Positions 1-47,216 of a stretch of 64,000 nt of DNA are shown here, in pieces. Source of the DNA: Octopus bimaculoides (lineage: Eukaryota); NCBI RefSeq assembly GCF_001194135.2, contig NC_068998.1:10196543-10260542 (forward strand). The letters are read 5' to 3'. The stretch's first letter is position 1. Each line of letters starts with the position of its first letter. The position numbers and the translations under genes are program-made. The notes under the pieces were generated by a model. That model was given only the letters and a program-made list of their open reading frames with translations, was not told the DNA's origin and did no database searches.

Positions 1-2002
1 ATTACCACTATTCGCTGTAATTAAGGAAATGAATAAAATATGGAAATCCACGGTTAAGGGGAGGTAATTCAGTGAGTATAATTTTTAATCATATACTTCC
101 GTATGTTTATCTACCTCCTTTAGTCAATGATGAGGATTTAATTTGATCAACCATAATTCTCAAACAAAATCAGTATGACACAGTGGGTAATGAGCCTGCA
201 CTGTGATCTGGCGAAGAAGTACTACAAACGTAGTGCAGTCTGGTGGCCTATTATCATGTGTAGCTGACTCTTTCGACAAGTTAAACTGGGCCTAGTTACA
301 TGACCAGCTTATATAATATAAAGAGAAGCTTGTAGTGTGTTTGTATGTTATTTCACATTAATGGTGAAACTATGAACAAAGTATTAAAAAAAAAACTCAA
401 TACCTTCGAATGAATCGATCTCAGTATCTCTTTTTAAAGCCCAGTGCTTATTTTATCGAACCAACACCAGTTGTCAAGTTATGGTGGGAGATGAACACAT
501 ACACGCACAGGCACGCACGCACGCACACACACACACACGCGCGATGAGATTCATTCAGTTTCTATCTATGCTAGATGAGAGCTATAGTTGAAGACACTTA
601 TCCAAGGTGTCACACATTGAGATTGAACCCAGAACCATTTGGTTTGGAATTCAGTCATACCTGCATTTATATATGTATACATATAAATATATTACACATA
701 TACAAATATGCACACATATACACGCATACTCATGTACACAAATACATACACTCAACCACTGAAATTTAATGATACACGAGAACAATATTTAGATTTTTAA
801 TTTCTTTATTTTTTCAAAGAATTACATTTTTTCTAAAAGTGGAAGACCTTTCTTAACTAGTTTGTTCCAGGAGACTCGAAAAGAAAGAAAGTCATTATAG
901 AGAAAGCATCTAATTGTTAATTAAAAATTTAAGGCTGGCAGGATGATTAGAAAACCAGGTGAAATACTTCGCCACATTTGCATCTCTCTTTGCTTTCTGA
1001 GTTCAAATTCCACCAAAGTTAACATTACTGTTCATTTTCCAAGGGACAATAAAATAAGTAGCAGTCGAGGACTAGGGGTTGATGCAATCAACTAGACCCC
1101 TCCCCTCAAATTTCAGGCCTTATGACTATAGTAGAAAGGATTATTAATTACTGTATTTGAACGGGTATAAGGAACCCATTTTTGTCAAAAATTAGGTTTA
1201 AAAAATATGAGAGTCTTTTATACATGGATAGCATTATAGATATTAATAAATTACTTAATTTCTCGAACCTCAAATCTCCAAATTAGGGGGTTCCATATCC
1301 ACAAGGGTTCCTTATACAAGTTAAAAATGGTAAATATCTAAGGCAGTGAGCTGGCAAAAGTGTTGGCAATTTGGACAAATGCTTAGCAGTATTTCTTCCA
1401 ACTTTACAGTATGAGTTCAAATCCTGTTGAGGTCAGCTTTGTCTTTCATCCTTTCATAGTCAATAAATTAAGAACCAGTTGAACACTGGGGCCTTGCAAG
1501 TACAGATTGGAGCCTGGAGCAGCTTCTTGGCTTGCCAGTCCTCCATCTAACCGCAGCCAGCATAGAAAGTAGATGTTAAACAATGATGATGATGAGCTGG
1601 CAGAATTGTTAGCATGCTAGACAAAATGCTTAGCGATATTTTCATTTGTCTTTCATCTTTCTGAGTTCAAGTTCCACCAATATCAATTTTGCCTTTCATC
1701 CTTTCAAAGTCAATAAATCAAATACCAGTTGTCATAATTATCAAGTGGCGATTAAGACCAAGGAGAGATAATTATAAAACTCAAAAATTCTCTGAAGTAG
1801 GAACAAAACCTGCTTTATGAGTCAGATAATATAGATTTGTGTGGCTTGGTTGGAAGCCATAATCCAATAGCTTTAGTTGCATGGTTTGAACTTATGACTT
1901 AAATGGTTATTAATCCAGCAACTTCATCTCACAGCATCTACTTCTAAGACTGAAAATTCTCAGTCTCAGAAAGGAACAAAGAAACGCAAAACACCAACTT
2001 AC

Positions 2003-2117
2003 ATTTTGCATGCTGATGAGCACAAAAATCTCCAGAAACCACCAACATTGTCTTCACAAGTTGCCACGCAACCACTGGATAAATCTAGGTTCTGTAGACG
2101 AGCAATAATGTCATCAA
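2003..2117 (-). CDS. Secreted peptide precursor, coding exon 2 (IDDIIARLQNLDLSSGCVATCEDNVGGFWRFLCSSACK)
   Basis: Acceptor gatatttttcag|, phase 1 fits exon 1, open for 115 nt, CX3C-X11-CX3C. Ends at AT|gtaagt, or reads through to KM-TAA (stop ends at 1999). Confidence 0.78.
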
Positions 2118-2334
2118 CTGAAAAATATCAAAAACATCAACAATGATAAAAAATAATAACAACAGTTCCCTTGTGGTTATTTAAAAATTTTAAAGACGGG
2201 TGAAAATGAATAAAAGATGTAAGGTGGCAAAGTGGGGGAATCATTAACATTTTGGTCAAATTTTGCATGGGAATCGTGTCTCAAAATAAAGTGGTCCTTT
2301 TGAAGAAGATATACATATAACTTGGAAAACTTAC

Positions 2335-2425
2335 TTGAGAATCTCTTATCTATTTCATCATCAGAATACACACTGGCACTCAGTACCAAAGGCACAAGAG
2401 CCAAGAAGAAAAGTACGATTTTCAT
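2335..2425 (-). CDS. Secreted peptide precursor, coding exon 1: signal peptide + acidic spacer + KR (MKIVLFFLALVPLVLSASVYSDDEIDKRFS)
   Basis: Exon 2437-2335 with acceptor ttttattttaccag|, aatacCATG context and phase-1 donor A|gtaagt; typical hydrophobic signal peptide. Confidence 0.8.
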
Positions 2426-2761
2426 GGTATTCAGTTTCTGGTAAAATAAAAATGACACATGGAATCTATGAGACAGGATTACAAGGAGAAGGAGTTGAGA
2501 AAATTACAACGAAGTATGTTTGGGAGGAATGTATTAAGACCCATGGGTCCAGATGGCTGCAGCACACACACACACACAACAACAACAACAACACACACAT
2601 GCACATTCATCCAAAGTGTATTCAAACATTGATATTTGTCAAGCAAATATGAAAGAGAGAACTCAATTCATGGTCTGGCTCTCCATTGGTTATGACAATG
2701 AGAGTTCCAGTTGATTTAATCAATGGAACAGCCTGCTCATGAAATTATGTATGCATGTATG

Positions 2762-2805
<44 letters not shown>

Positions 2806-3229
2806 TGTATACATACATCTATATATATATATTTATATATATAAGCATTGATTAGAGAACAAGCATCAAATTCAGGCCAACACCTTTATACAAACCCATG
2901 CTTCTATACATTTCATCATATACAAATAATACCATGGCCTTCAACATATAAAAGAAATACATACATAAGCACCAAAATTAAAAAAAATATATATGCACAT
3001 ATAAAAATACAAAAACTAATAGGAGGATCTGTCTGGAAAAAGTATATGCAATTCGACTAAAAAAGGTGATCAAAATGAATTACTAAAACATATCAATTGA
3101 CTAAAAAAAATTTTTTTTTACCCCTCAGTTAAAAATATATCAAAATAGTCAGTTTTTTAAAAATGAAGCAATCCATGGTAGATCTGGTATCTAAGGCGCG
3201 TAAGAGAGTCCCCAAAAAATAAAAGCGTA

Positions 3230-6194: not shown

Positions 6195-6463
6195 CTAGAA
6201 GAAGAAAAAAGATGAAAAGAAATCAACATTATATATATTCTTTTATATGTTTCAGTCGTTTGACTGCTGCCATGCTGGGGCACCACCTTGAGTGGTTTTA
6301 GTAGAAGAAATAGACCCCAGGACTTATAATTTTTAAGACCAGTACTTATTTTATCAGGCTCATTTGCTGAACCGCTAAGTTACAGGCAGGTAAGCACACC
6401 ATCTGTTGTCAAAAGATGGTGGGGGAACAAGCACAGATACACAAACATATACACATGCATATA

Positions 6464-6494
<31 letters not shown>

Positions 6495-9400
6495 CGATAG
6501 GCTTCTTTCAGTTTCTGTCTACGGAATCCACTCATGAGGCTTTGGTCGGCCAAAGGCTATAGTAGAAGACACTTGCCCAAGATGCTACGTGGTGAGACTG
6601 AACCCGGAACCATGTGGTTGGTAAGCAAGTTACCACACAGCCACTTTATATATATGCACATAACGGGCTTCTTTCAGTTTCTGCCGACCAAATCCACTCA
6701 CAAGAGATAATACTTTTCATTAAAATACTATAATGCAACTTACAGTCAGAAAAGCTTCCTAATTGCATTCATACAAGATTTAAGACAGATAAATTTTCCC
6801 AAATGATAATCTCACACTATTATCAATGATCTTTACCTGTATACTGCATTTGCATATATCTGAAAGCATGCTATCTGTTTCGGTGCATATCTGTAAATGA
6901 AAATACATCTGTCTGCGTGCATGATCTTTAATGTTTTTATGACCTCATTCATTTTGTGTTCCTGAAACATATCTACTAAATGCTTCCAAAATATAATTTG
7001 GTTTAACTTCATTATACATACATACATATCATCATTTAACATCTGTTTTCCATGCTAGCATGGGTTGGATGGTTTGACTAAAAACTGGTAAGCTGGGGTG
7101 CTGCACCAGGTTCCAATCTGATCTGGCATGGTTTCTACTGCTGGGTGCTCTTCCTAAAACAAACCACCCCAAAAGTGTAGTGGGTGCTTTTTATGTGCCA
7201 CTGACATGGGTGCCAGTTATGCAACACCAGCATCAGCCACAATTACAATCTCACTTGGTTTGACATATTCTGAAGCATGGTATATTGTCAAAGTTCTCGG
7301 TCACTTGTTACTGCCACCATGAGGCCCAACATTTCAACAGTGCTTCTTATATACCAGTTATGTGACACTGGCATCAGCCACACACACACACACACACACA
7401 TACATATTTATTTATCACCTGTATTGACCAAGCTATTGAAAGTTGCTATACACTGCTGGTCAAAATGCACTTCTAAACCTTTCTTGACCCAAATCTTCTT
7501 CTCATCATTGTGGAGGCCTTCAGAGTGCCATTTTCAAATCTCTCAGATACCATTTGGTAACTGCACAGGTCAACCTGCCGTTCATAAACCATGCAACATG
7601 TCTAACCCAGTGGAACTTATGCTTTTGGTATTCTGCAATCACATCATTCACTCTGCTCCATTCTCAGTTACTTCTTTTCCGATATACACTCCCAATGGTA
7701 TTCTCACATGACTATAGTAGCTCAACCCATGCCAGCATGGAAAATAGATGTAGAACGATGAAAATATTCATGCATTTTTAACTACTTACAAAATTGCATA
7801 CAACCAGTCTTATCAGCATATGATGTTGATATCAATCAGAAGTCTGTTCAAGAAGACGCCATCTAAACTTTAACCTTTTAGCATTCAGATTACTCTGTCA
7901 AATGTAATGCTTACTTGTTCACATTGTTTTAGATTTATCATTCATTATCTCATACCTTTGAGATTTTCATGATGTGATTGTGTATTTTAAGAATGACATA
8001 ATAGAGTAAGTGTGAGGAGATCTGATTGATCTAAAAACAAGACAGGTAGAATATTGGGCTGGATGTGGCCAGTTTAGGAGAAAGGTGGAATAAATAGAAC
8101 ACCGTTCTGTGGAGCACGTTCATGCTTTATTTCACTTCAGCCCTCACACATTCTCTCTGTATGCAGAACGTGGCCATGTCTCACTACCTTGCAGCATTGC
8201 ATGGTACTGAGTTAGGGGCATTGAATGCAGAAGAAAAAGAAGGGCTTTCTAATAGATCCTTACACACATTTAAAAACCCATTTAACCAAATCACTTTCAA
8301 ATAGATTTGAACAGGATGAATGAAAGTATAATAATAAAACAACAACAAAAAGAACCATGCATGAGCAGATGCCAAAATTACAGGCCTGTCTGCTTGTTTA
8401 CTTTGAAATATCAAGATCAGCAGAAAGAATTATCAGGTAAACTGATAAAAGACTGCCAAGAAAAAAACAATCAGCTTGCTTTACTTTTCTGCCCCCTCAG
8501 TTTGCAATGCTATGGTAGTACTTCTCAGACATTTGTAGATATGATCTACTTGAATTTTATGAAGGTATTCATTAGAAGAAATAGAGGAGTCCATGCGAGC
8601 TTACACAGTCATGATGTCAGTAGTACTGAGTGTTGGCAGCACAACAATAGGGCTTTTCAAACAAATGCAGATCTGGTCTGGTCTGCCAAGATCAGTGGTT
8701 ACCAACAGGTGTCCATATGGCTCCTGAAAACAATTTTGCCTTAAATGTTGTATTGGTGTGTATTGCAAGAAACAGCTAGGTTTCTTTAACATTTTACATA
8801 GTTCAACCCAAACAAGTTAAAACAAATAGGAGTTTCAAAAGAAGTTTTTATAAAAACGAGTTTCTAAACAATGAATGGCTATGGGGGTCCACCAGAGTAA
8901 CATAGTAACCAAAAGGGTTTATAGATTTTTTAAAAAATGGTTGAGAACCCTTGTCCTAGATTTTGGAAAAGTATTCAGCCATCATGAGTCACAGAGTCAA
9001 GTGCATCAATGGAAAGGGTTTCCATTGGTTTCTTTGACTGAGTATCAAAGTTGCTTTCTATCAACTAAACAGGAATGGCTGTGTGGTAAGAAGTTTGATT
9101 CCCAACCACATGGTTCCAGGTTCAGTCCTGCTGCATGGCGTCTTAGGTAAGTGTCTTCTACTAAAGCCTCTGGTTGACCAAAGCCTTCTGAGTGGATTTG
9201 GTAGATGGAAACTGAAAGAAGCCCGTCATATATGTATATATGTGTGTCTCTCTCTCTCTCTGTCTCTGTATCTGTGTTTGTCCCCCATCACTGCTTGACA
9301 AATAGTGTTGGTGTGTTTATGTCTCTGTAACTTAGTGGTTCGACAAAAGAGATTGACAGAGTAAGTACCAAGTTTAAAAGAACAAGTACTGGGGTCAATT

Positions 9401-12400
9401 CATTTGGCTAAAAATTCTTCAAGCTGGTGCCCCAGCATGGCCACAGTCTAATGACTGAAACAAGTAAAAAATGTTTGCTCACTGAATATAAGCATATAAG
9501 TGTCCAGGACTTTAACTATTCAACCTCTGGAAATAAAATATGCATTCAACACAGAGAAGTGGCGAAAAGATAAAATAATCAAAATTGGTAAAAGAAAACA
9601 ATGAACTTACTTGAGCAATCCTCGATCCAGTTTGTCGACAGCATCACATAAGATGTGTATGAAATGTTAAGAAAGAAAACATGAAATATATGAAAGGGAT
9701 GGGTCATTTATCAAATATTTTTGTTGTTACTGTTTTTTAGCCCAGTTCAACTCTGATCAATCAATCATGATATTTGTTATTGTAAAAAATATTTTGTTTC
9801 ATGGCCTAATCTAGAAGGCTCTGAATCTTTCTGACTTCATCACACACACAAGGCATCCTTATTGTTTAACCTATTAGCATCTAAACTGGCCACATCCAGA
9901 CAAAATGTTCTACTTGTTTTATGATGAACTGGCCATATCCAGCCTCTCACACCTACCCTACAATGTCATTCTAAAATTAAACAATCACATCTTCAAAATC
10001 TTGAAACTACTAAATACTAAATGACCTTACTGTTTCTCCAAATTTCAGGCATCGTGACTATGTTATAAACTGTTGGTTATACATGAGTGTAAATATATGA
10101 ATATCACAATTTTCATGATACTCAAGCATTAGTATGAATTTTCCACTGCTTAAATTCATAGATCTAAGAATTTCGTGACACAACTAGATAACTCTAGTTG
10201 TGCACCAAATGTGCCATGGAGCTCCATTTGAGAATCACTGGTTTAATCAACTTGAATTTAACAACATTAACAAAAGCTAAAAACAAATTAGTTCTGGTCA
10301 AAAAGGATATGTTTATAACGTCCATGCTGGGAGTATGACATTGTCCATATTGAATCAAATAGAAAACAGAGACTGCCACTACGCAGAAACAATTCACGTG
10401 AATCTGGTGGGTCCAGCTGAATAAAGATAAAAGAAATGAATATATATGTATATATATATATATTTGACAGGAAGGACAACAAAAGAAAGAAAGAGACCTC
10501 GATATTATGCAAATAGAGGAATTTATCTGTAAAAATATGTGACACTTATTCAGTAGCCATGATAAAACTCAGAGTTTCGGATGCCGGGGTGGGAGACCAC
10601 GCCAACATCTCTTCAGTTATCCGGCCAATTGAAAATTCCTGTGAAAAATGACCGTTAAAAACAAAGGGAAATTACTGTGTAGTGACAAAATGCGTATATT
10701 ATCGCATGCACGCATATATCCATATACGCACGCATATATTTACATACGCACACATCCACGCACACACTCCCAAGCACGCACATGTACCTTCCAAGCACTG
10801 TTGTAAACAGAGGAGGTGAGCTAGAATGTTAAAACTTAGTGTGCTTGCCTGGCAGAGTTCAAGGTCAATCTGTACCAAGCGGTTTTACACTGTGTGCATT
10901 AGATTTGTTACTATGGCAACAGTCCAGTTACTTATTGATCAGACCATGTATGTTTCAGCAAATACAGTACTTATGTGTTTCAATGTTTTAATTACTTTTG
11001 AATATAATCAGCTAATTAGATAGCTTTAGTGAAATAATTAATATTTTTATGGAAATTATGATGGAAGGTTTTAACTTAAATATGAGCATGTTAAATGGGG
11101 GACAGTTTGGTACAGTAGAACTAGAAGTGGGTGGTATGAAAAGGGGAAAGCAGAAGGGAAAAACACAACTCGATAACATTTGGTTCAAAAGATAAGTAAA
11201 TTATTTGAAGGCCCTGCATTATGACCGATAAAAATAAGGAAAACAATATCTCACCCNNNNNNNNNNNNNNNNNNNNNNNNNNNNNNNNNNNNNNNNNNNN
11301 NNNNNNNNNNNNNNNNNNNNNNNNNNNNNNNNCCATCCCCCCTCCCAAATCACAACCATTACTATAGCCACCACCTACGCTGCTGCTGCCACTGCCACCA
11401 CCTCCACCACCACTGCTGCTGCCGCCGCCACCACCACTACCACGGGTGTATGGTAGTAGCTGTTGGTGGGTGGCAAAATTATTGAGTTGGATACAGAAGT
11501 GATAATGGTGGTTCTCATAGCAGTAGTAGCGGTGGTGGTAGTATGGGGGTGGTGGTGGTGGGTAAGACGGTCACTGCATAAAAGCACCTAGTATATTCTG
11601 TAAAGTGGTTGGTGTTAGGAAGGGCATCCAGCCATAGAAACCATTCTAAAACAGATATGGAGCCCAGGTAGTCCTCCAGCTGGCCAACTCCTGTCAGGTT
11701 GTCCAACCCATGCCAGCATGGAGAACAAACCTTACATGATGATGATGATGATTCCTTTTTACACTTTCATGTTTCTTAGCGGGGCTCGGAAAGGAGTCTC
11801 AGGGAGTAGCATCCCTGCCTTCCCCGAGCTAGTTTTCCACCACATTTCTTTACAATTGTGGTTGAGGCCTTTGGTCTTGGGACCACTCATGTCTAGAAAC
11901 TAAAGTTTGGGGGTAAGCAAAGGCATGCTCCCCATAGAAAATCCAGCTTTGAAAAAGCCTTGTGAGAATAGCAAAGGAGCATGGACACCAGCCAGCCCAA
12001 AGGTTGGGGTAGGCTGCACCTGCTTACCTCAAAAAGGAAGGTGCAAACCCTCATCCTGGGTCACAAGCATGACTTGCCTTATGATGGCCAACAGCCTGAG
12101 GAAATGCTTGGGGTGAGGTTGGAAAGTTGGAATATGGGTTGTAAGATTCCACAAAATTAGGATTGCTCAACTGAAGTAGGATGCAGGGGACATGCCTGTA
12201 TGGAAGGATAACCACGATTGTAGTTAGCTTGGCATACCTTCTAGAGCACAGCAAACTGCCAGGAGTATTAGTCCTTTGTCCTCTCCTCTCTGAGGCCCAA
12301 TATCAACATCCATTCTCACCACTTCATCCCATGCTTTCCTGAGTCTACCCCTTTCACATGTTCTCTCCATAATTAGAGATTGGCATGTCTTGATGCAATT

Positions 12401-15400
12401 GTTCATATGTATAACACAACCATACCTGGGGTTGATTTCTTCAACTAAAAGGCAGTGCTCCAGCATGGCCACAGTCAAAATGACTGAAACCAGTAAAGGT
12501 TTAAAAGCGTATACCAAAGAGAAATATATTTGTAAATAACACTATTCCCAATACTCCCATACTCATCCCCTCCCATCAGAATCACCTGTAAAGGTAGCAA
12601 AGCAGAGAATATTACCTGTAAATCAGGCTGAGAGGTAACCCATCGACCAAACGACCCGAGGCAGGAGATCAAGTCGTATTTATGTGGTACTGGCCGAGAG
12701 AAATTTTCCTTTGTGAAGATGATATCATCTGTTTCTGTAAACATCCGTACTGTAAGTAGAGCAGAAAAAAAGGTGCATTTAAACTTTTCGTTGTTGTTAT
12801 TTACCATGAAGAGATCTCTGAAACAAAACTCCCTACAAAAATTAGACTTTATTCCATTTTGTTGATGTAAAAAAATTTCTGTTTTGCTTATTTTATGCTT
12901 AAAAAGTCCATGAGATGGATGCAGGTACAACTGTGTAGCTAAGAAGCTCCCTTTGCAGTCAAGTGGTTTCTAGTTTACTTTTACTGCATGGCACCTTAGG
13001 CAAGTGTCTTCTACTATAGCCCTCGGGTTAACCAAATCCTTGTGAGTGAACATGATAGAGGGAAAATGTGTGAGTCCATCATATATGTATGTTTTTGTGT
13101 GCCCCAGCCATTACTTGACAAATGGTGCCATGTAGTGGGACTGAACCAGAAGCCACTTGACTGCAAAATAAGCTTCTTAACCACACACTTGTACCTGCGT
13201 CCATTTCATGTCCCTTTACACATAAAAGGAACAAAAGAAAAATATAGGACCTGGTGTGATTTTTTGAGATATTTTTTAGGGAAAAAATACATTTTAGATG
13301 CTATCAAATACGGTAAGACTAAATGCAGTTATTTACTGTAAAAGGAATTTACAGTTGAATCTAATATAGTCCCTAGAAGGAACATTGATATAACTTTGTC
13401 CAGTAAACTTACCGCCATTGTCGATGATACAGTCAACTCCCAGACCCCCAGTCTCTTCCATCACACTGCTGCGTAACATACTCCCATGGCCACTCACATC
13501 GATTATTTGTGCTGAAAGGAGAGTAAATTATACACTGTTAAAAAAGAAGTTAGAGGATATCTTGAGCCAAGAGGCTAATTAAGCCAGAGCTTGTTCTAGG
13601 CTCCAAAGCATTTAAGTGAACGAAAGAATAAGACAACACCCTAAACAAGATGTCAGACTATTGCACGGTTAACTTTCCAGTTGCTACTGGTACATTTCCA
13701 GGTGACTGGACTGGACTGGAGCAACAAGAGATATATGTGTCCTTGCATATAGACACTGGCATAGCTGGAATCAGAGACTAACAAAACATCCAATTTTTGC
13801 TGTGTTGACCATTCAGCTTAGTTCCAGAAGATCAAGACAAATGACACTCTCGTCATCTCAAAGAACAGGTCACCTTATTCTGCTGTGCTGATTACTGGCT
13901 CTTGAACATTTTAAGTCATGGAATGGAAAAGCAGTGTGACACCATTCTGTGAACTCAGCCTTCCTTTTTAGAGCATAAAGATATATGTTTCATTGCCTGT
14001 CACCAGATTAAAATAAAATGTGTTTTCATCGGTTTCAAATGCTTCCAGCAGATCTGAGCAGACTTCCATACATTTTGCTTTCAAATCAGCTGTCAATTAC
14101 CAAAGTACCCAGTTTGCACAGGTTTTCTAATAACCAGTCTTTCACAATTTCCTGTAATGTCTTTTGACCATAGTCCAGTTATGCAGCAAGTTCACAAACT
14201 GCAACTTGTTTATCAAAGCATATCATTTCATCCACTTGTCAGCAATTGCAGCTGATGGCCTTACACTGTGTGGTTTATCTTCAATGCTGGTTTCCTTTTC
14301 TTTGAACTTCCTCCATCTGTACACATTGCTCTTGTCAATGGTGTCATCTTTGTAAACAACCCACAGCGTGGCCATAGTTCAATAGAACATGTAAATAAAA
14401 GATAAAAGACAATAAAATTGATAAGAATATGTTTTTAGAAAGAATGGAGTACCAAAGTGGAATAAGATTAACCATTATTTACCTAATGAAGGGATTGAAG
14501 ACTTTAAAAAATGTCGTTCTTCTGCAGAAGCCACAGTTGTAATAACCTAGAGAGATTTATAATATATATTAAAATATATTTTCTAAAATTCATGAAAAAT
14601 AATAGGATGTGTGATGCTTCCCACTGTCACTACTCTAAAGTTTATATTTCCCCACTGCAATTAATATTACAATTCAAAAGGTATTTTTTTTATTGGAATT
14701 TTAGCAAGATTTAGTGCTAAAGACACACTGTGGAAAAAATAGATGTATGGAATATGAAAATCCGGGCTCAAGGGGAGGTAATTCAGTGAGTATTATTCTT
14801 AAACATATACATACATGTTTATGTAGTATATACACACATACATGCATATATATTTATTTATTTATATAACCATCATCATCATTCGTCGGCATTTCACATC
14901 CACTTTTACATGCTAGCATGGACTGATAGGTTAACTGGTTAACTATCAGATTAATAATAATAATAATAATAATAATAACAACAACAATAACGATAATAAT
15001 AATAATAGTTTCAAAATTTGGCACAGGGCCAGCAATTACATTGATTCCAGTACTTATTTAATCGACCCTGAAAGGATGAAAGGAAAAGTTGACCTCAGTG
15101 AAATTTGAACTCAGATCATGAAAATGGATGAAATAATGCTAAGCATTTTGCCCGTCATGCTAACAATTCTGCCAGCTCACAGCTTTATAATAATAATAAT
15201 AATGGTTTAAAATTTTGCCACAAAGGCAGTCATTTTGGGGGAGGGAATGAGAAGATTACATCGTTTATTTTGGCATAATGACCCAAAGTACCACAAAAAA
15301 AAGGCATTTAATTATTTATTTCACTGAAACTAAAAATGAATTGTCTATACCTTTGCCCCCCAACTCAGGGCTAGCTGAATGGTAATACTGCCGAAAGTCG

Positions 15401-15747
15401 AGGCTCCATCCATTACAAGTATTGTGTCTCCAGCACAGAGTCGACAGAGGTAGTGAAGTGCAGTGTAAGCATGTAAGCAGTCACCGATGCCACAAGCAGC
15501 ATCTTCAAAACTCAGCATCTCAGGTTTCTTTACTATTAAGAAAGAAAGAAAGAAAAAAAGAATGTGAGAAATGATAATAGAATAAGATGTCATTAAAAAA
15601 TATAAGATTATAAAATATCTGACGCATTTGAACAGAGTACAAATGGTATAGTGTGTGTGTGTATAGATATATACACATATATATACATATGCATATGTGT
15701 GGTATGTGAATATGTATATATATGTATGAGTATATATGTATGTGTGT

Positions 15748-15799
<52 letters not shown>

Positions 15800-17172
15800 A
15801 TATGCGTGAGTATGTATATGTATACATGTATATATGAGTGTATATGTGTGTGTGTGTATATATATAACAAGAAAACAGGATGGTCATTACAGGAACACAT
15901 TTGATCAATACTGATCTTGGGGAAGATGGGGTGTTGAAACAACAACAACAACAAAATTGAAAACTAATAGAGAAACTCAGTTCTCTACTTACCAATGTCA
16001 TATTCATGGAATATACAATATTCGGCACAGCCAGAATTTATGCTGGAAAGCGGAACGACACCTGGAAATAAGAAAGAAGAAAACGCCTTTCAGTAAAAGA
16101 AGTTCAAATGTGAACTATAGCAGTGAGAAGTGACTTCCAAGAGGCGATTGAAAGGGTCAGTCCAAACCCTCCTTTAGTCTATTCTAACTATATTTCCGAC
16201 TTTCATGGTACTTCTTATATATTTTTCATGTTTTTAAATGAGTTGCAATGTCACTGGTGCCAAGCTGTATCGGCCTTTGCCTTCTGCTTGGATAATATCA
16301 GAGGCATAGAGAGGGGAGGCTGGTATGCGTGGACAACTGCTGGTCTTCCATAAACAATCATACCTGGGCTTGTGTCTTGGAGGGGAACTTTCTAGGAGCA
16401 ATCCCATGGTCATTCATAACCGAAGAGGGTCTACTCTTTACCCTGATACGCTAGAAATAGCAGCTATTCAAGTATTGTTGTTGTTGTTGTTGGCACTCTA
16501 TCGCTTACGATGTCGAGGGTTCCAATTGATCCGATCAACGGAACAGCCTGCTCGTGAAATTAACGTGCAAGTGGCTGAGCACTCCACAGACACGTATACC
16601 CTTAATGAAGTTCTCAGAGATATTCAGCGTGACACAGAGTGTGACAAGGCTGACCTCTTTGAATTACAGGCACAACAGATACAGGAAGAAAGAGTGAGAG
16701 AAAGTTGTGGTGAAAGAATACAGTAGGGTTCACTACCATCCCCTGCCGGAGCCTCGTGGAGCTTTAGGTGTTTTCGCTCAATAAAAACTCACAACGCCCT
16801 GTCTGGGAATCGAAACCGCGATCCTATGACCGCGAGTCCGCTGCCCTAACCACTGGGCCATTGCACCTCCACTATTCAAATATAACTTGAAGTTAAACAA
16901 CAAAACAACAACTATCTCAGCCTTATGCACTAATTTAATTGAATAAATCACATTGTTGTCATATTTAAAGTTAGATACTTACCTACAACAACATCCCCTT
17001 CTTTGAATGTCAAGACACCTTCCCCTACTTGAGTGATAACTCCAGCTACATCTCGACCCACAGCATAATGTTTCTGATCAGGATTTTTTCGGAATACTTC
17101 ATCAAGAACCTATCAATGTCAAAACATGAAGAAAAAAAAAAAAAGGCATAGGTCATATGGTCTGAAGGTTGT

Positions 17173-17205
<33 letters not shown>

Positions 17206-20201
17206 AAAAGAGTACTAGTTGAGTACCAGGTGTCCTCTACTATAGTTTGAGGTGACCAATGTCTTGTGAGCGAATTTGATAGATGAAAACTGTGTGGAAA
17301 CCTGAAGTACATATATGTGTGTATTTTTGTGTTTGTGTTTGTCCCACCACCATTAATTGACAACTGTTGTTGGTTTGTTTATGTCCCTGTATCTTAGTGG
17401 TTCAGCAAAAGAGACTGATAGAACAAGTAGATTTGACGAAAATCCTTCGAGGTGGTGCTCCAGCACAGCTGCAGTCCAATGACTGAAACAAGTAAAAGAT
17501 AAAAGCTGAAAGATAACCCCTGACTCCCACCCTCCNNNNNNNNNNNNNNNNNNNNNNNNNNNNNNNNNNNNNNNNNNNNNNNNNNNNNNNNNNNNNNNNN
17601 NNNNNNNNNNNNNNNNNNNNNNNNNNNNNNNNNNNNNNNNNNNNNNNNNNNNNNNNNNNNNNNNNNNNNNNNNNNNNNNNNNNNNNNNNNNNNNNNNNNN
17701 NNNNNNNNNNNNNCAACAATAACAAAATAGATACCTTCTGGTTGATGGGACTCAGAGCTGAGGTTTTGACCTTCACTTGAACTTCATTTTTGCCAGGAGA
17801 TGGAACTGGCAGCTGAAGATGAAGAAAATATAAAACACATGAATTTTGTTTATGAAACACTAATTATTTTTTATTATTATTTTTTATTGCCCACAAGGGG
17901 CTAAACATAGAGGGGACAAACAAGGACAGACAAATGGGTTAAGTCGATTACATCGACCCCAGTGTGTAACTGGTACTTAATTTATCGACCCCGAAAGGAT
18001 GAAAGGCAAAGTCCACCCGGAACCATGTGGTTAGTAAGCAAGCTACTTACCACACAGCCACTCCTGCACCCATATACACATATATAAAAGATAGGTGCAG
18101 GTGAGATTACAAGAGGCACAGGTGTGGATGTGTGGTTAAGAAGATTGTTTCTCGACCATGTGATCTCAGATTCAGTCCAACTGTGTAGTATCTTGGAGAA
18201 ATGTCTTCTACCATAGGCCTTGGTAGAGTAAAGCTTTGTGAGTGGATCTGGGAGACAGAAACTGAAAGACGGCGAGCTGGCAGAAACGTTAGCACGCCAG
18301 GCGAAATGCTTAGCGGTATTTCGTCTACCGTTACATTCTGAGTGCGGGATGCATAACCATTTTGTTCAAAACAATATAGTGAATACATAAAAAATAAAGA
18401 CAACCAACATATTTATTTACCAAAGAGTTATCAAAGAAGGCGACGTTTAGCAATAAGATAGTTATACCACACTTAGTATGCACATATCCGAATCTCACAA
18501 ACTAAGCATCAAAAAAGGTAAGTGAGATTTGTGTAACTGGTGTTTAGCTTTGAAGATATCATTAATATTTGCTTAGGAATTGCTGCATCCAACCAAGAGA
18601 ATTGCTTTCAAATGTTCATCAGTCGACCTTGTTCAATGTGCTGACTTCACATCCTTCATTATTGAAGATGTTTGAGCACAGACATAAGTTGTTCTAAACA
18701 CTGTTGCCATACCAAATGCAAACGAACAATCATTGCTGGAACTTACACAAAAGATACAGGGCGGCGGCGGGCCTGATGAACTGCCCTTGCGGGCCGGAGT
18801 CTGGTGACCCGTGCTTTAGAGGAAAAAGGTTGTAAACTAGAAGGCTTTGCTTTCCAGTTTATTTGATATCACAAAAGCTCATTTTCTTTGAGGAAACGTG
18901 ACACCGTACCAGTGATTACAATTAATTCACTTTGTTGCAGGTGCAAAACAACAACAACAACAACAAAGTTATGGCTTTCATAGGAGTAAGGTCAGGATAA
19001 CGGAAAAACAAGTCAAAAAGTGTTGTGAAGACAAGTTATTGTCACAGAGAAAATCCTGAGTGTTGTTGTGAATGTTGGTAGAGGCTATTTTCAGATAGTG
19101 TGAATTCGTCAACGCCCCTTTTGTTTTGCATTAAGCACGGCTCTGCGTTTTCGAAGTTGTATTTATTTAGCAAGTAGTTTAAATTAGAAATCATATGTTG
19201 AAACTGAAATAAGTACGTCGTGGAAACATTACAACAACCTTTTAAAACACACATCAACCGTTATATTAAAATACTATACAAGGTGTTAGTAGTATTTCGT
19301 CGTACATCTACGTTCTCGACACTAACGGATGTCAGTGGCTAATGAGTCTTCCTCACAAATTGCAGTATGGTTATGTATTATACTTCTTACGTAAAAGAAT
19401 GATACACGATTGGGAAATCATACACATTACAAATACATTCTAAAGGTGTTCTGAAGAATTTCAGTGAATATGCGGAAATAAAGCGATGCAGTGCAATAAA
19501 TAAATGTGCGGGAGGGAGAAGAAAAGAAACAGAATTATGTTAAATTCTTTTGTCTGAGCATCAAACTATACAACTGGCATGAACGGGTTCATTGATCCAG
19601 CCAGTATGCTACGGGTATTTACTGTATTGAACTAATAATAGAAGGTGGAGGTGGTTAATAGTAACAGTACAGCTTCGGAACAGGGCTTAGAATATTTGCT
19701 TTCGTGTTTTTAAGTGTCATGTTCAAGCCGTACGGTATTGTCTCGGCCTTTAGCCCCGATGCAGTCGAGAAATTAGTACCAGTGGCATGCCGTGACCGAT
19801 TCAATCGATCATGTGGTACCACTTACAAAAAGAAAAAAAGGCGATCTTTCGAGATCGCCGATATGTTTAAATAAAAAGAAAAGAATACACAGTGTTTGTG
19901 AATGTGTGTGTGTGTATATGTATATATATAATCCTCCTCTAGTTATAAGTAAATTCACAAGCTATTGTATGGGCAATCTATTATAAATCAATCAATACCA
20001 CAACTGTTGCCATGTTTTAAATATTAACAGGAAGATGGAAAACTCGATCACTTTGACACAAGAAATAAACACTTATAATAACAATAATTAAAATGATAAC
20101 AATATCAGATCGTAATATAAACAACTCACATCGGTCTCAAGAACATATTTTGATGTTTCTTCGTCTGAATTAACAACAGATTGCCAAAACACGGCTTTCA
20201 T
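6098..20201 (-). CDS. CRYZL1: Quinone oxidoreductase-like protein 1 (zeta-crystallin-like, FERRY complex subunit Fy-4), complete 11-exon CDS: join(complement 20130-20201, 17735-17812, 16983-17109, 15993-16061, 15351-15532, 14483-14546, 13413-13511, 12616-12749, 10311-10416, 9611-9656, 6098-6194); 1074 nt = 357 aa + stop
   Basis: Exons (72,78,127,69,182,64,99,134,106,46,97 nt) splice in frame with matching phases. The protein is colinear with human CRYZL1 as recalled: HAYTALHYL, MDGASTFGSITIQLA, EETGGLGVD, PHKYDLISCLG, LQLDPPDS, C-terminal VQF*. Confidence 0.95.
9070..9470 (+). mobile_element. SINE family A copy, CpG-decayed, in CRYZL1 last intron
   Basis: Same layout as 22998-23395 with many CG->TG/CA changes. 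Confidence 0.85.
9611..9656 (-). CDS. CRYZL1: CRYZL1 coding exon 10 (HILCDAVDKLDRGLLK)
   Basis: AC acceptor after the U12 branch site, donor AA|gtaagt, 46 nt; aligns to human CILKDVMEKLSTGVFR as recalled. Confidence 0.9.
9657..10310 (-). other. CRYZL1: U12-type (minor spliceosome) AT-AC intron, 654 nt, phase 1
   Basis: 5' end ATATCCTTTTT (consensus RTATCCTTT). Branch motif TTTCTTAAC at 9674-9666, then ATTTCATAC| at the 3' end. Splicing at these ends restores the frame RYK-H-ILCDAVDKL. Confidence 0.93.
10311..10416 (-). CDS. CRYZL1: CRYZL1 coding exon 9 (LDPPDSRELFLRSGSLCFLFDSIWTMSYSQHGRYK)
   Basis: Acceptor tttatctttattcag|, 106 nt, followed by the U12 donor |ATATCCTTT. Confidence 0.93.
11760..12410. 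mobile_element. RTE LINE pieces: plus-strand 5' region (~11760-12240) and minus-strand 3' fragment (~12240-12410)
   Basis: VRLESWNMG resembles the APE-domain start (GSWNVG); opposite strand ERTCERGRLRKAWDEVVR. Confidence 0.55.
12616..12749 (-). CDS. CRYZL1: CRYZL1 coding exon 8 (VRMFTETDDIIFTKENFSRPVPHKYDLISCLGSFGRWVTSQPDLQ)
   Basis: Acceptor ctctacttacag|, donor CAG|gtaata, 134 nt. Confidence 0.94.
13413..13511 (-). CDS. CRYZL1: CRYZL1 coding exon 7 (AQIIDVSGHGSMLRSSVMEETGGLGVDCIIDNG)
   Basis: Acceptor ctctcctttcag|, donor G|gtaagt, 99 nt; EETGGLGVD motif. Confidence 0.95.
13750..14365 (-). mobile_element. Mariner transposase relic in CRYZL1 intron 6
   Basis: Decayed translation VYKDDTIDKSNVYRW.KFKE..TSIEDKPHSVRPS ... 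LTADLKAKCMEVCSDLL ... NLVTGNET (cf. mariner IVTGDET). Confidence 0.8.
14483..14546 (-). CDS. CRYZL1: CRYZL1 coding exon 6 (VITTVASAEERHFLKSSIPSL)
   Basis: Acceptor tctctctag|, donor G|gtaaat, 64 nt, phase 0/1; bridges exons 5 and 7. Confidence 0.88.
15351..15532 (-). CDS. CRYZL1: CRYZL1 coding exon 5 (VKKPEMLSFEDAACGIGDCLHAYTALHYLCRLCAGDTILVMDGASTFGSITIQLALSWGAK)
   Basis: Acceptor ttctttcttaatag|, donor AAG|gtatag, 182 nt; start of the Rossmann fold, strong CRYZL1 match. Confidence 0.96.
15993..16061 (-). CDS. CRYZL1: CRYZL1 coding exon 4 (GVVPLSSINSGCAEYCIFHEYDI)
   Basis: Acceptor ttctttcttatttccag|, donor G|gtaagt, 69 nt, phase 1/1. Confidence 0.92.
16490..16870 (-). mobile_element. SINE family C (tRNA-derived head gaggtgcaatggcccagtggttagggcagcggactc)
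   Basis: Near-identical to 20992-21305 (+, internally deleted); fragments at 2660-2745 and 42810-43135. Confidence 0.88.
16983..17109 (-). CDS. CRYZL1: CRYZL1 coding exon 3 (VLDEVFRKNPDQKHYAVGRDVAGVITQVGEGVLTFKEGDVVV)
   Basis: Acceptor ttgatag|, donor G|gtaagt, 127 nt; MDR motif GRDVAGVITQVG..V..F..GD.V. Confidence 0.93.
17735..17812 (-). CDS. CRYZL1: CRYZL1 coding exon 2 (LPVPSPGKNEVQVKVKTSALSPINQK)
   Basis: Acceptor ttcttcatcttcag|, donor AAG|gtatct, 78 nt; MDR-family GroES-like motif. Confidence 0.93.
18490..18813 (-). mobile_element. hAT (Charlie/GTF2IRD2-like) relic: C-terminal dimerisation domain plus one terminus
   Basis: FRTTYVCAQTSSIMKDVKSAH*TRSTDEHLKAIL; terminus cacgggtcaccagactccggcccgc next to 8-mer ctttagag (resembles NTCTAGAN target). 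Confidence 0.75.
20130..20201 (-). CDS. CRYZL1: CRYZL1 coding exon 1 (MKAVFWQSVVNSDEETSKYVLETD)
   Basis: caagATG start, 24 codons, phase-0 donor GAT|gtgagt; resembles human N-terminus MKGLYFQQSSTDEE. Confidence 0.88.
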
Positions 20202-21305: not shown

Positions 21306-22997
21306 ACAGCGAAGACAGCTATTCTTTATAAACATGTTTTTCGGTCATTTTCTGATGAACAACGCTGCAGTTTCCGTCTACCAAATTCAGTCACAAGTAG
21401 AATGCACTTGCCCAAGGTACCACACAGTCATTCTTGCTCCAAATGCACGCGCGCGCATGTATTGATAAAAGTTGCCAGAGTTGCCTCCCTTAGCTAAAGG
21501 CTTCAAAATTATGCGACCCGACCTTATTTTCGAGGTTAATTTTGTAGTAAAAAAAAGAGAGTTATTGTGCAAAAGGTATAGTTTATTTGGTAGCCGAAAG
21601 ATTACCGAATCTTTTGATACCTCATACGTCAAAATTGGCAACATAGGTGTACACGTACCACACACGCACGCACACACACACGCATGCGCGCACATTCTTG
21701 TTGTAAATGCTCCTTCAAGATAAATTTCTAAATGAACATCATGTGTCTGTAAATCTCTGAGGTCTGAAGTGGCTGAGTTAAAAAAAGATTAATCAATAAT
21801 TGTAGTTGGCGTTGAGGTTTGCCGTTAAGTTATTGTTGAAGCGACTATCTGAAGTAGTTTCGAATTCTCCTCCAGTTAATGTCACCTTATTTAACTTTTT
21901 TGTAGACACACACGTACACGCACGCACACACACACACACACACACAAATCGTGTTCCCTAAACAAATTCAAGGTAGAATGTTGTGCTGAAAAATAAAAAA
22001 TAATTAAGATATATAGAAACAAATAATTATCATAAATATTGATTGCTAACATTGGCACAAGGTCACAGATTTTCAGGAGCAAAGAGTATATAGAAGTATT
22101 GATCTGGTCCAGATCAAAAGCCAACTTAGATGAGATTTGAACCGTAAACCTAAAGGGACGTAACTCCATGTACTATAAAGACAAAAATTATAATTCTTAG
22201 ATGAGAATTGTCGGAAGAAACCTCAACAGCGAGTAGATAACTGAGAATTAAACGCACTAGACTAGTTGTTTTACTGCACCTGTAACTCTAAACTTTACCT
22301 GTCCTGTTGAAGAAATCCGATTGAGTTCAACGACATACAACGAAGTTATTGAAACAACTCTCATGCATGCACGCATGTATGTATGTGTCTATCTTATTGA
22401 TAAAGTGAATTTTATGTTAATGAAATAAATGTAAATATAAGTTGAGAGTTAAGTTCAGTGTCGGTGCTGACTGAGCAGATATGTGATCGAAGACAGTCCA
22501 GCTATGACTATCATGTCATATTTTGTTCTAGACGTTGTGTACCTCGAACTACATTGACTAGTGTGTCTTTTTTTAATTTTTTTTTATAAGACAACAGAAT
22601 ATAACTTGGCTGCTATTTCTAGTCGATCGAATGGCCACATAGGAACTCCTTGTCGTTCGACTTGTGATCAATCCTGAACTCGCAAGTCCGATGACCAAAG
22701 CCTTTCAACTGAGACCATTTCCCACAATAGAGAGTATTAAGTCTTGAATAATCCAGTATCCTCCCCCCACTTTCAAAGCTGCAATGAAATGTAGTGATAT
22801 GAATGAGAAGATTTTACTGCCATCCGTTCTAGCATCTTAGAACAAGCATGGGTAACCTTTTCCCCCGAAGCGAGCCGCATGAGATATGACCCTTCATTAG
22901 TCCAGTCGTATCTCTCAAAATAAAATTGAAGATAATATTTCGTTATGCGTGCTATTCAGAAAGTCCTCCGGGTCGCACGTTGACCATGACTAATCAA

Positions 22998-23395
22998 GTG
23001 GCTGTGTGGTAAGTAGTTTGCTTACCAACCACATGGTTCTGGGTTCAGTCCTACTGCGTGGCACCTTGGGCAAGTGTCTTTTACTATAGCCTCGGGCCGA
23101 CCAAAGCCTTGTGAGTGGATTTGGTAGACGGAAACTGAAAGAAGCCTGTCGTATATATGTGTGTGTGTGTGTATGTGTGTGTGTGTGTATGTTTGTGCGT
23201 CTGTATTTGTCCCCCCAACATCGCTTGACAACCGATGCTGGTGTGTTTATGTCCCCGTAACTTAGCGGTTCGGCAAAAAGAAACCGATAGAATAAGTACT
23301 AGGCTTACAAAGAATAAGTCCTGGGGTCGATTTACTCGACTAAAAGGCGGTGCTCCAGCACGGCCGCAGTCAAATGCCTGAAACAAGTAAAAGAG
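22998..23395 (+). mobile_element. SINE family A (tRNA-derived, CORE-like ccttgggcaagtgtctt motif, internal (TA/TG)n), full-length CpG-intact copy
   Basis: A/B-box-like head gtggctgtgtggtaag...gggttcagtcc, tail gactgaaacaagtaaaaga. Other copies: 440-660(-), 5730-5895(-), 6245-6645(-), 9070-9470, 12915-13160, 17215-17500, 33440-33830(-), 35815-36510(-), 46380-46770(-), 46850-47420, 53680-53905, 60620-60740, 63255-63590. Confidence 0.9.
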
Positions 23396-26300
23396 TACAT
23401 AGATTGAAGAACCTGACTCGCTGGTAGAAATGGTTTACGAAAGTGCGGCTTTTAAATCTCACAGCAGTTACGCCCACTTTACCCAGAATTCCATATTCAG
23501 TCTAGAATCTGTGATAAGGCTTCTTGGTTCGAAGAAGGGGAAAAAAGCTGCTCCCACACACACACATATCATACATATATTATATTATATACACACATAA
23601 CAAATATATACATAGATATATGTATGTATTTATTTACTGCAGGAGTGTTATTTGCAACCACAAGAAAAAAGAAGCTGAATAACTGTAGAATAATGCTAAC
23701 CTAAGGGGGGTACCTTTGAAAGAAAACCTGTTTTTCTCTTATAGTGTTTGTGACCCTGTCATGCTCTTCTGGGGGGTGTTTATTATTGGCAGCAGTCTGT
23801 GAAACAATTGCCCCCTCATCCACAAAAAGTCAACAACTAAAATATCGTTGATACTAATTGAAGGCTTTTGCTTTGTGTGTAGGCGCCTCAGAATTAGTAT
23901 AAAATTCCTAATAACTATCCTTTCATTTATTTATTCATCATATTGTGTGTGTGATCTAGGTTTTACCATAACCACAAAAAAAAAAGAAAAGTGAAGCCAA
24001 GGCATTAAAAAAAAAACGAAAAATAATCCGCAGCAATTCCTTGACAATTTCTTTCGTTGTCGTAATAATATATGTTACATAAATCACCGTCGTTTCATCA
24101 TCGAAATCGGTAAATTTGTTAATTGTGTGGCAGATTTTTCACCAAACGACATAAAAGAACCAAAAAAAAAAAAAAATTGAATTAGCAAAAATACAGCAAT
24201 TCCAGTTGATATATGTACATATATATATAAATTTAAAATATATATGTATATATAAATATGATACTTTAAATCACTTTGGCATTAGGATATATCTCTTGTG
24301 TCAAAAATTTAATCACGATGAAAACATATCAAGGTAGGAAATTTTAGCCTTATTTTAATTTGTGAATATTAATATATTTTCTATTTCTGCGTGTGTATTT
24401 ATGTAATTTTACTTGTAATGAGTCGTGTGTGTGTATATATATGTCTTCCATGTGTATATAAGTACATTATTATAGTTGGTTGATCATAGTTCTGGTTTTT
24501 CATAATGCTTTGATATTCCGGCAAATAAAAGACAAGATATCTTGAATTTTACCCACGTTATTGCTAACTCTAGCATTTCAGCATAAGCGAATCCAGAAGC
24601 CATGTATTCGGCAACGCGACAGTTTTACTAATTAATAGTTAGTAATTGTACGTTATATACGCTAAAGTTGATTTAAAAAAAAAATTACAGAAATGATACA
24701 AAAAAGAAAGAAAAACGAACTTAAAAACAAGTTCTAGTATAACTATGACATTTGTACGCCGGCTGAAGCTATACTCGAGAAATCTATGCGATCGCTTGAC
24801 CTGCTAGATATAGCAGCCAAACCTCTCTCAAACCACACCTTACAGTTGCTGGAAAGGAACGGACGCGTCAGATGATGTTGACGTAATAATACTTTTATAA
24901 AGGACGAGTTGGTCACGATTAGAATGCCTTTGATTGTCCGGTTCGATCAAACATAATCTTGAGACTCAACTATAGAATAAACGGGAGCTGCACTTTGATA
25001 GTTCGAAATCGCAGTCAAATTCTTCATATAAAACAAAGGGGGCTACACATTGGTTATTGTTGTCTTAGCTATACATGATGGCAAAGAGCATGAATGTCAC
25101 TTAGTCTCATATATTGTCATTGCTGCGAAATCAAATGTAAAACTGACTCAAATTTCTGGTGAGGCGAATATGCGTTTCGTTTTCTGATTCTAGCCATTAT
25201 TTTCCCTTCTCGTCAATAAATATGCTTTGAGAAAAGTATGAATGCCATTTAATCACCTACGCCTCCTTATTCTGTAAAGTGATGGTTCATCGACGCTGTC
25301 GTCGAAGTCATCGTTTCATGACATGATCGAAGCGATTGATTAATTAAATACCAGGCAATATTTTAGTCCATTCCGGGGTCCGAGTTCAAATCCCACCGGA
25401 GGAATTGAATTTTGCCTTTGAAGCATTTGGAATGAGTCAGGATGAGTTGCTAAAATGAATAGCAGACATCTATTGACGCCGATTTCAATCGGCAATACAC
25501 TACATCCTTTGACACACCTTAGAGGTTTGTGACCTTGTTGTGCCAATGTGAAAAAAAAAATTGTCATCACCACCACCATCATCGTATTGTTTAACCCCAG
25601 TTCAGCCCTGATGATGAAATAAACCTGTGATCATAAGCATTCCAGTTCGTCTTTTATGCCAGACACATTATAACCGGTTGGATAGAGATGGGAGGGAGGG
25701 AAATTTGGTTGTTTCTAGCAAGTCATGCGATCGCGTACACCTTCCCCACTTTTTGGACAAACATCAGTTCCTCCTACACACATTCTCTGAACCGTTTCAT
25801 ACATTTGTGATTATGATTGTTGCTATTTTGTAGCAATAATCAAGTATATCCTTGAAGATAGCTATGGAGAAAAGTGGAGTTAGAAGCCTGTAGCCTTCGG
25901 CAAAGAATTCGTGTTGCGTATTATTGTATTTACTTTCGAAACTCCGACACTTGCTCATTTCTAAGGAAACAGAAATCACTCTAACGCACTCTATCTTCTA
26001 ATCACTAATTGGATATCTTTTCTGTGACCTTCAGAAATGCTACAACATAATATGTTTCTCCCCCACTTAATCCCATTGATTTGGTGGATCAATATCGTTT
26101 CATTTTATGATTGCAGTTGTTTCCTCGTTTTCTCTCTCTTATTGCTGTGTGTGCGTGTGTGTTCTACCTATTTTCAATAGACCTTATCAAGCGAGAGGAA
26201 TTATTTGTCGTCCTCGAACAAGAGACCGTATATGCTATCGTTTAAGACCCACAAGTTAGCTTCGACTAAGCTGATTTATAGTCAAAGCGTTCCACTCATA

Positions 26301-36265: not shown

Positions 36266-36312
<47 letters not shown>

Positions 36313-46849: not shown

Positions 46850-47164
46850 GCAGAAGTGGCTGTGTGGTAAGTAGCTTGCTTACCAACCACATGGTTCCGG
46901 GTTCAGTCCCACTGCGTGACACCTTGGGCAAGTGTCTTCTACTATAACCTCGGGCCGACCAAAGCCTTGTGAGTGGATTTGGTAGACGGAAACTGAAAGA
47001 AGCCCGTCGTATATATGTATATATATTAAATTTAAATGTTGAAGTGAATCTAACGAATTTTGTGTGTTATTTTAAATGGCTTATAAACACCTTCCACGCT
47101 GCAATTGTTTTCGTTCCAGCACACGATCTCAGATCAGGTCACTTGCTATGCAAGTACATCTCCG

Positions 47165-47216
<52 letters not shown>

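Follow-up and report, generated by a model that had tools for sequence, protein, structure and literature searches.

Helical hairpins stapled by two disulfides occur in several groups of small cysteine-rich polypeptides. The solved structures of plant vicilin-buried peptides are disulfide-stapled helical hairpins. Scorpion peptides of the kappa-hefutoxin type and the framework-XIV hairpin peptides of cone snails form a two-disulfide helix-loop-helix on a precursor with a signal, a pro-segment and a mature part. Small Tim proteins likewise carry a twin CX3C motif on a helical hairpin with two disulfides, but these proteins reside in the mitochondrial intermembrane space and have no signal peptide. 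Here we describe a gene for a small, predicted secreted peptide with a CX3C-X11-CX3C motif, found at one edge of a 64,000-nucleotide stretch of the Octopus bimaculoides genome (NC_068998.1, positions 10,196,543 to 10,260,542; hereafter the window). We hold with high confidence that the locus is a genuine, unannotated three-exon octopus gene and a member of a secreted-peptide family.

All parts of the gene lie on the minus strand. The coding part of exon 1 (2335..2425, 91 nucleotides) opens with the ATG at 2425 and is followed by a GTAAGT donor. It encodes the predicted signal peptide MKIVLFFLALVPLVLSA, an acidic pro-segment (SVYSDDEIDKR), the residues FS and the first base of Ile31, and is 97% identical to the corresponding part of protein P0001 in a tblastn comparison. 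Intron 1 (2118..2334, 217 nucleotides) is in phase 1 and runs from GTAAGT to TTTTTCAG. Exon 2 (2003..2117) contributes the predicted N-terminal helix DDIIARLQNL, an LDLSSG motif and the predicted helical hairpin CVATC-x11-CSSAC, which contains the CX3C-Xn-CX3C motif of the alpha-hairpinin fold class. Joined in frame at consensus splice sites, the two exons give the product MKIVLFFLALVPLVLSASVYSDDEIDKRFSIDDIIARLQNLDLSSGCVATCEDNVGGFWRFLCSSACK, which divides into MKIVLFFLALVPLVLSA, SVYSDDEIDKR and FSIDDIIARLQNLDLSSGCVATCEDNVGGFWRFLCSSACK. This join of 2425-2335 to 2117-2003 had been put forward in the original prediction from the DNA letters, and the analysis bears it out. The accompanying remark that the program-made list of open reading frames (ORFs) misses exon 2 was also correct, as the list holds only fragments of the gene, namely a 93-residue ORF at 2177-2458 and a 22-residue ORF at 1999-2067.

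The same prediction had left a choice between a product ending in Met followed by a stop and a continuation into a further exon. The homologues decide in favour of the further exon, and the short ending arises only without splicing at 2003. Exon 2 ends at a phase-2 donor (AAA AT/GTAAGT, with the donor at 2002-1997). Because this GTAAGT is read in phase 2, it places an in-frame TAA (2001-1999) directly after the exon, and retention of intron 2 gives a product ending in ...CKM. The donor at 2003/2002 is used in relatives, since all three Octopus homologues continue beyond ...ACK, with either I(V/I)LEQTG or VILGKPN. The last exon of the O. vulgaris locus is located some 1.4 kb further downstream, and the corresponding exon of the window is at 874-853. 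Intron 2 (875..2002, 1128 nucleotides, phase 2) has flanks that are collinear with the O. vulgaris locus L002 at 84-88% identity. The coding part of exon 3 (853..874) aligns with the annotated last exon of the O. vulgaris proteins P0002 and P0023; it follows the acceptor junction ...TTTTCGAG / TCTCCTGGAACAAACTAGTTAA and adds (I)LLEQTS and a TAA stop. An AATAAA polyadenylation signal (805..810) lies 42 nucleotides past the stop and is also kept in the O. vulgaris alignment. The full three-exon product has 75 amino acids and ends in CKILLEQTS. Given the third exon, the mature part is about 47 residues long, instead of the roughly 41 estimated at first.

The spliced product matches three Octopus proteins of 74-75 amino acids, with E values of 1.1e-28, 3.0e-26 and 3.4e-18. 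O. bimaculoides A0A0L8FGZ6 is 81% identical to it (E 1e-28) and has an identical signal peptide, while an O. vulgaris protein and O. bimaculoides A0A0L8GWF1 are 75% and 55% identical, respectively. Overall, the octopus homologues are 53-81% identical and have the three-exon structure, the signal peptide, the KR site and the cysteine motif in common. A0A0L8GVS8 from O. bimaculoides, CAI9726847 and CAI9736015 are further octopus relatives. The exact 75-residue product is absent from a collection of 15 billion proteins, and the gene is therefore unannotated. Neither tblastn nor a motif scan found a second copy within the window; C-x3-C-x10-13-C-x3-C has a single match among all six translated frames of the 64 kb. 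The gene lies at the extreme edge of the window, with 852 nucleotides left beyond exon 3, and a tandem neighbour, should one exist, would be located outside the window. Rfam and tRNA scans found no RNA families or tRNAs at the locus on either strand, and the plus-strand ORFs across it are short and without support.

The orthologous region of O. vulgaris holds two tandem 75-residue "hypothetical predicted proteins", about 30 kb apart on OX597831.1, at about 42.06 and 42.09 Mb (loci L001 and L002). The upstream copy (P0023, locus L002) is the better orthologue of the window gene. Five collinear blocks of 83-88% identity link the window to L002; between them they span the promoter, the surroundings of both exons and the 3' end. 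The candidate upstream block of the window gene (2426..2843, minus strand; promoter or 5' untranslated region) aligns collinearly with the sequence preceding the O. vulgaris orthologue and is 84.8% identical to it across 587 nucleotides (blastn). Over the proximal 400 nucleotides the identity is 91.8% of aligned columns. The upstream block also contains microsatellites 140-380 nucleotides 5' of the start codon, (GT)n/(GTT)n at 2565-2600 and (AT)n at 2760-2800. A further block of 800 nucleotides (L002 24390-25188 against window 13033-12145, 86-88% identity) is found on the downstream side of the gene in O. vulgaris but on its upstream side in the window; the block is either a repeat copy or the trace of a local rearrangement.

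An exhaustive profile search of 1.84 billion representative sequences yielded 12 true members together with four repeat-protein false positives. Additional members from oysters and octopus came from a word-indexed profile search. The family comprises at least eight genes in O. bimaculoides and at least four, on two chromosomes, in O. vulgaris. Other members come from Argonauta hians, Sepia esculenta, Magallana gigas (LOC117681481), Crassostrea angulata (LOC128155920), C. virginica (LOC111127373) and the protobranch Solemya velum, where three genes have adjacent numbers (ScPMuIL_000291/293/294). Like the window gene, the oyster and Solemya members encode a signal peptide, a dibasic site and the CX3C-X11/12-CX3C motif, and their two introns agree with those of the window gene in position and phase. 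Unlike the window gene, they have a GIG loop in place of GFW, and the mature parts are only about 30% identical. The peptide was at first taken to be a cephalopod one, a view that the oyster and Solemya genes with their shared intron positions correct. Judging from its sequences, the family is mollusc-wide and unnamed, not cephalopod-specific.

The Sepia member was recovered as a Logan contig from SRR19578103, an RNA-seq data set of juvenile Sepia esculenta (PMC9538352). This contig (P0009) carries the join of exon 1 to exon 2 and still contains intron 2. Another contig of the same 90% cluster (P0019) is spliced to the last exon, and its product ends in IIFQQ followed by the stop. The Sepia contigs are thus joined as predicted, and therefore the family is transcribed and spliced in a decapodiform too. 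The C. virginica family gene has been reported as up-regulated in larvae under acidification.

The architecture of the precursor is strongly conserved. Over 17 aligned sequences, the four cysteines, the Ala before the last Cys, the dibasic site, M1, K2, and the L and P of the signal are invariant. The window product has the signal pattern MK..L..L...P and the CX3C-X11/12-CX3C motif, both of which vary little or not at all within the family. At the position of KR28, each of the 16 full-length members has KR, RR or KK. The layout first read from the window alone, with a signal, an acidic pro-segment, a KR site and four cysteines, thus holds, and frame, KR site and cysteines are kept in the homologues from other octopods. 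Both introns have the same positions and phases in the window gene, O. vulgaris, C. virginica and M. gigas, intron 1 (phase 1) falling just behind the dibasic site and intron 2 (phase 2) two codons past the last Cys. Orthologues and paralogues from independent annotations are 74-82 amino acids long and share the same stop position.

Several existing models of family genes appear to be faulty. The entries P0005, P0008, P0009, P0030-P0032, P0010, P0012 and P0021 are mis-spliced or are cut at the phase-2 GTAAGT donor, where they end in CQL, CDV, CKM or CNM. The RefSeq model of M. gigas begins with an additional 5' exon (L005 3001-3084) that holds an in-frame ATG further upstream, and some octopod models (among the N-termini of P0008, P0025 and P0004) likewise start upstream of the signal-peptide Met. 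Such extensions would bury the signal peptide, and they are probably 5' untranslated region taken as coding. In C. virginica, a gene for a trypsin-domain protein (L003 1-715) lies upstream of the family member; octopus gives no sign of this neighbour being conserved.

The conformation of the mature part was modelled with AlphaFold. For the exon-2 peptide (38 residues, alignment of 17 sequences), the model has a predicted local distance difference test (pLDDT) score of 72.8 and places helices at residues 2-9, 16-23 and 26-37. The predicted fold is an N-terminal helix followed by a helix-turn-helix, with one CX3C on each helix of the hairpin. By analogy with stapled hairpins, the cysteines would pair C1-C4 and C2-C3, that is, outer with outer and inner with inner. 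The predicted mature peptides of the family have 45-58 residues, and their grand average of hydropathy is positive throughout. The predicted net charge is -3 for the window peptide and -1 to -5 for cephalopods and oysters; two Solemya members have +2 and +3. A peptide that is both anionic and hydrophobic is therefore a poor fit to the classical cationic, membrane-lytic antimicrobial peptides, and this candidate class was rejected on the window's charge of -3. C-terminal amidation is not a conserved feature of the family, because the C-termini vary among its members.

Comparison with known families gave no assignment. A Pfam scan of the product and 13 family members returned only noise at E up to 10. 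A single one of the 13 hits PF02950 (Conotoxin), with E 0.19; neither the closest relatives nor the translated exons of the window do so. No member reaches the gathering score of PF02950, and membership of the Conotoxin family was rejected. One oyster isoform, A0A8W8L1V4, is named "Conotoxin" in UniRef, and we infer that this label stems from the weak PF02950 similarity. A PDB search with the single window sequence found no match at E up to 10. The family profile found nothing significant in the PDB either, its best matches being 7LVG (E 0.79) and 7LXK (E 1.2), aligned on the cysteines only.

These two entries are the leader peptides of Jug r 2 and Ara h 1, respectively, plant alpha-hairpinins of the vicilin-buried type, and their CX3C-X11-CX3C spacing is identical to that of the window peptide. 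The plant peptides differ in being cut from seed-storage precursors and in being rich in arginine and glutamine, whereas the molluscan peptide is hydrophobic and anionic. Homology to the plant alpha-hairpinins was rejected, as E values of 0.8-1.2 indicate a resemblance of scaffold and are no evidence of common descent. The helical hairpin of the original prediction nevertheless agrees with these results, both CX3C pairs lying in two adjacent helices of the model and the nearest, non-significant profile matches being peptides of this type. The toxins of the kappa-hefutoxin type and of framework XIV are shorter, generally basic, and have neither the N-terminal helix nor the LDLS motif. They gave no sequence match in the PDB search at E up to 10, and their likeness to the window peptide is one of predicted scaffold and of precursor layout. 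A small Tim protein was rejected on the classical hydrophobic signal at the N-terminus of the window product and on the lack of a Pfam Tim10/DDP match at E up to 10.

Among molluscan peptides, clionin and PXRX are, like the members of the window family, small secreted precursors with conserved cysteines (PMC8398477, PMC6425005). Both were rejected as relatives. The cysteine pattern of clionin in the supplement of PMC8398477 differs and there is no similarity, and the P[FM]R[WY] motif that defines PXRX is absent from the window family. Strings diagnostic of the family were not found in the supplements of the mollusc prohormone survey (PMC6425005) or of the oyster visceral-ganglion neuropeptide study (PMC8398477). 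Nor was the family found in the supplements (888,000 characters) of a peptide study of the O. vulgaris posterior salivary gland. A 2026 preprint sorts cephalopod salivary-gland secreted proteins into 44 superfamilies, 27 of them without an assigned function. A literature search by UniProt and LOC identifiers and by diagnostic peptide strings found no description of the family beyond the C. virginica larval up-regulation entry. All family members are "uncharacterized" or "hypothetical" and lack a precomputed Pfam domain; the admission that accompanied the original prediction, that the family was not recognised, was a fair one. The scaffold class and the precursor layout are already known, and the family itself has no detectable relation to characterised families.

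The rates of change of signal and mature part differ between the branches of the family. When M. gigas is compared with C. virginica, synonymous sites prove to be saturated, with a proportion of changed synonymous sites (pS) of 0.70. In the mature peptide the corresponding proportion for nonsynonymous sites (pN) is 0.046, against a likewise saturated pS of 0.75, a departure from neutrality with p = 4e-13. The signal is 59% identical in this oyster pair and the mature part 89%. The oyster mature peptide is under strong purifying selection. An octopus paralogue with the bivalve-like GIG loop (A0A0L8GWF6/CAI9736015, P0007/P0018) has a mature part that is 92% identical between species. In the octopus clade to which the window gene belongs, the pattern is reversed, with signals 82-100% identical and mature parts 72-85%. 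The window product differs from A0A0L8FGZ6 at 1 of 28 positions of the prepro part and at 13 of 47 positions of the mature part (Fisher p = 0.012). Similarly, the two O. vulgaris copies have identical signal peptides and mature parts that are 83% identical, which suggests either homogenisation of exon 1 or faster change of exon 2. The data from this octopod clade are compatible with diversification on a scaffold that is itself conserved, and also with a relaxation of constraint in a recently duplicated gene.

We propose that the gene belongs to a family whose ancestral product is a secreted peptide acting as an endogenous extracellular ligand, and we lean towards this combined statement with moderate confidence. 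The signal peptide of 17-18 residues would direct the precursor to the endoplasmic reticulum and the secretory pathway. A proprotein convertase would then cut after KR28 and remove the acidic pro-segment of 10-11 residues. The 47-residue product, beginning with FSIDDII, would form a short amphipathic helix followed by the helix-turn-helix hairpin, braced by the two disulfides of the CX3C-X11-CX3C motif, and would be released as an anionic, rather hydrophobic extracellular peptide. The window copy sits in a tandemly duplicated octopod sub-clade with a constant prepro part and a fast-changing mature part, and its target may have shifted or may co-evolve with it. An endogenous ligand is suggested because sequence and gene structure are deeply conserved, the oyster peptide is constrained, and the family is expressed in oyster larvae and cuttlefish juveniles. 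The ligand role taken by itself, resembling that of a hormone, a neuropeptide or a developmental factor, is tentative; it is the likeliest of the roles considered, but we rate it slightly below even odds and hold it with less confidence than the combined statement.

Several observations weigh against this proposal. The transcript and splicing data come from the Sepia esculenta relative, and the window gene is known from genomic sequence and homologues. The positions of signal cleavage and KR cleavage and the pairing of the cysteines follow from general rules. The full-length AlphaFold model of the closest relative is poor (pLDDT 53), and a Foldseek search of the PDB with the 38-residue model, which is probably too short for the purpose, gave no match. 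An abundant classical neuropeptide might have been picked up in the searchable mollusc and oyster neuropeptide lists, from which the family is absent. The window product ends in Ser where the O. vulgaris and O. bimaculoides copies have a C-terminal Gly that could serve as an amide donor. At exon 3, the acceptor AG is kept and the polypyrimidine tract is 13 nucleotides shorter than in O. vulgaris. The coding identity between the window and O. vulgaris, at 90%, is no higher than that of the flanks (87-93%). Finally, the ratio of nonsynonymous to synonymous substitution rates (dN/dS) is 1.1 when the window gene is compared with P0023 and 1.7 when it is compared with P0002, and the O. vulgaris pair gives 1.9; these values are based on 15-24 substitutions and are indistinguishable from neutral drift (binomial p > 0.5).

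Some of these points would be explained if the window gene were a drifting recent tandem duplicate, with an intact frame, redundant, without a function of its own and heading towards a pseudogene. A dN/dS of about 1, a coding identity equal to that of the flanks, the shortened acceptor tract, the lost terminal Gly and the absence of the product from the protein collection all fit such a fate. Against it, the 75 codons contain no stop or frameshift, and both GTAAGT donors, both AG acceptors, the start codon, the KR site, the four cysteines and the AATAAA are intact. The substitutions spare the invariant positions of the family, and a missing annotation is expected for three tiny exons, several relatives being similarly mis-annotated. 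We therefore regard drift as quite improbable. It is more improbable by far that the reading frame arose by chance or is the N-terminal piece of some larger known protein. The sole argument for a larger protein is that the window ends 852 nucleotides past exon 3. Independent relatives of 74-82 amino acids stop at the same point, which contradicts this possibility, and so do the stop and the AATAAA after exon 3, the coding end of the Sepia transcript at the same point, and the single occurrence of the motif in the window.

A defence or venom effector, in which the octopod expansion is directed at prey, predators or microbes, has more in its favour. The conserved signal and hypervariable mature part would then resemble those of conotoxins or frog-skin peptides. 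The family is multi-copy, with its eight or more O. bimaculoides genes and the O. vulgaris pair 30 kb apart, and tandem or sister copies combine identical signals with mature parts of only 72-83% identity. The dN/dS of the octopus clade is at or above 1, although not significantly above it, and CX3C hairpins are an established toxin and antimicrobial scaffold, with an example from amphioxus (PMC11767717). However, the mature peptide is anionic, no member appears in the O. vulgaris posterior-salivary-gland peptide supplements, and the family is present and strongly constrained in filter-feeding bivalves. The strong purifying selection in oysters therefore argues for an endogenous function of the family rather than for venom. 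The Sepia member is expressed in whole juveniles, which is uninformative on the venom gland. Taken together, we consider a defence or venom role of the window peptide unlikely. It is also conceivable that the two accounts apply to different branches of the family. An ancient molluscan hormone or developmental signal, predating the split of bivalves and cephalopods and absent from all neuropeptide catalogues, would then persist as the constrained GIG-loop gene in oysters and in one octopus paralogue, and the duplicated, rapidly diversifying octopod array with the GFW loop, including the window copy, would have been recruited to an outward-facing role such as venom, defence or chemical communication. 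If so, the passage from endogenous ligand to effector could be traced inside a single genome. This composite history is speculative, and we rate it, too, as unlikely. The proposal of an ancestral endogenous ligand remains our preferred one.

The remainder of the window contains other recognisable features. Exons of an orthologue of quinone oxidoreductase-like protein 1 (CRYZL1) lie on the minus strand at 15345-16028 and 17402-17860, and a 61-residue stretch of them matches human CRYZL1 (PDB 7ND2) at E 4e-14. The second of these ORFs enters a gap of undetermined bases (N) and, by eye only, resembles the N-terminal portion of an enzyme of this type. Six runs of N, 76-666 nucleotides long (11257-11332, 17536-17713, 27562-28115, 29293-29958, 61196-61783 and 62755-63229), indicate that the assembly is a gapped draft. 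Several of them are flanked by simple repeats that translate as YIYIYI or HTHTHT.

At least two families of dispersed repeats, about 150-450 nucleotides long, have many copies in the window and are also found around the O. vulgaris orthologues, at 70-92% identity. Copies of one family lie, for example, at 6235-6645, 9070-9469, 22997-23397, 36034-36506, 46848-47426 and 53676-53911, and copies of the second at 41055-41289, 17879-18017 and 55782-55899. They look like short interspersed elements or transposon-type repeats, and they explain most of the difference in intron size between the window and O. vulgaris.

For gene annotation, the locus illustrates how gene predictors systematically cut short or overlook genes whose three exons are tiny and whose phase-2 GTAAGT donor brings in an in-frame TAA. 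Orphan families of secreted peptides are common. If the peptide described here is a signalling molecule, mollusc endocrinology would gain a ligand family that is deeply conserved and so far uncatalogued, and oysters and octopus would be tractable enough for a receptor search. If the octopod expansion instead serves defence or venom, it would provide a clean case of an endogenous scaffold that was duplicated and repurposed, with an ancestor-like paralogue in the same genome. Conservation from bivalves to cephalopods, together with the contrast in selection, makes this family more testable than most orphan peptides.

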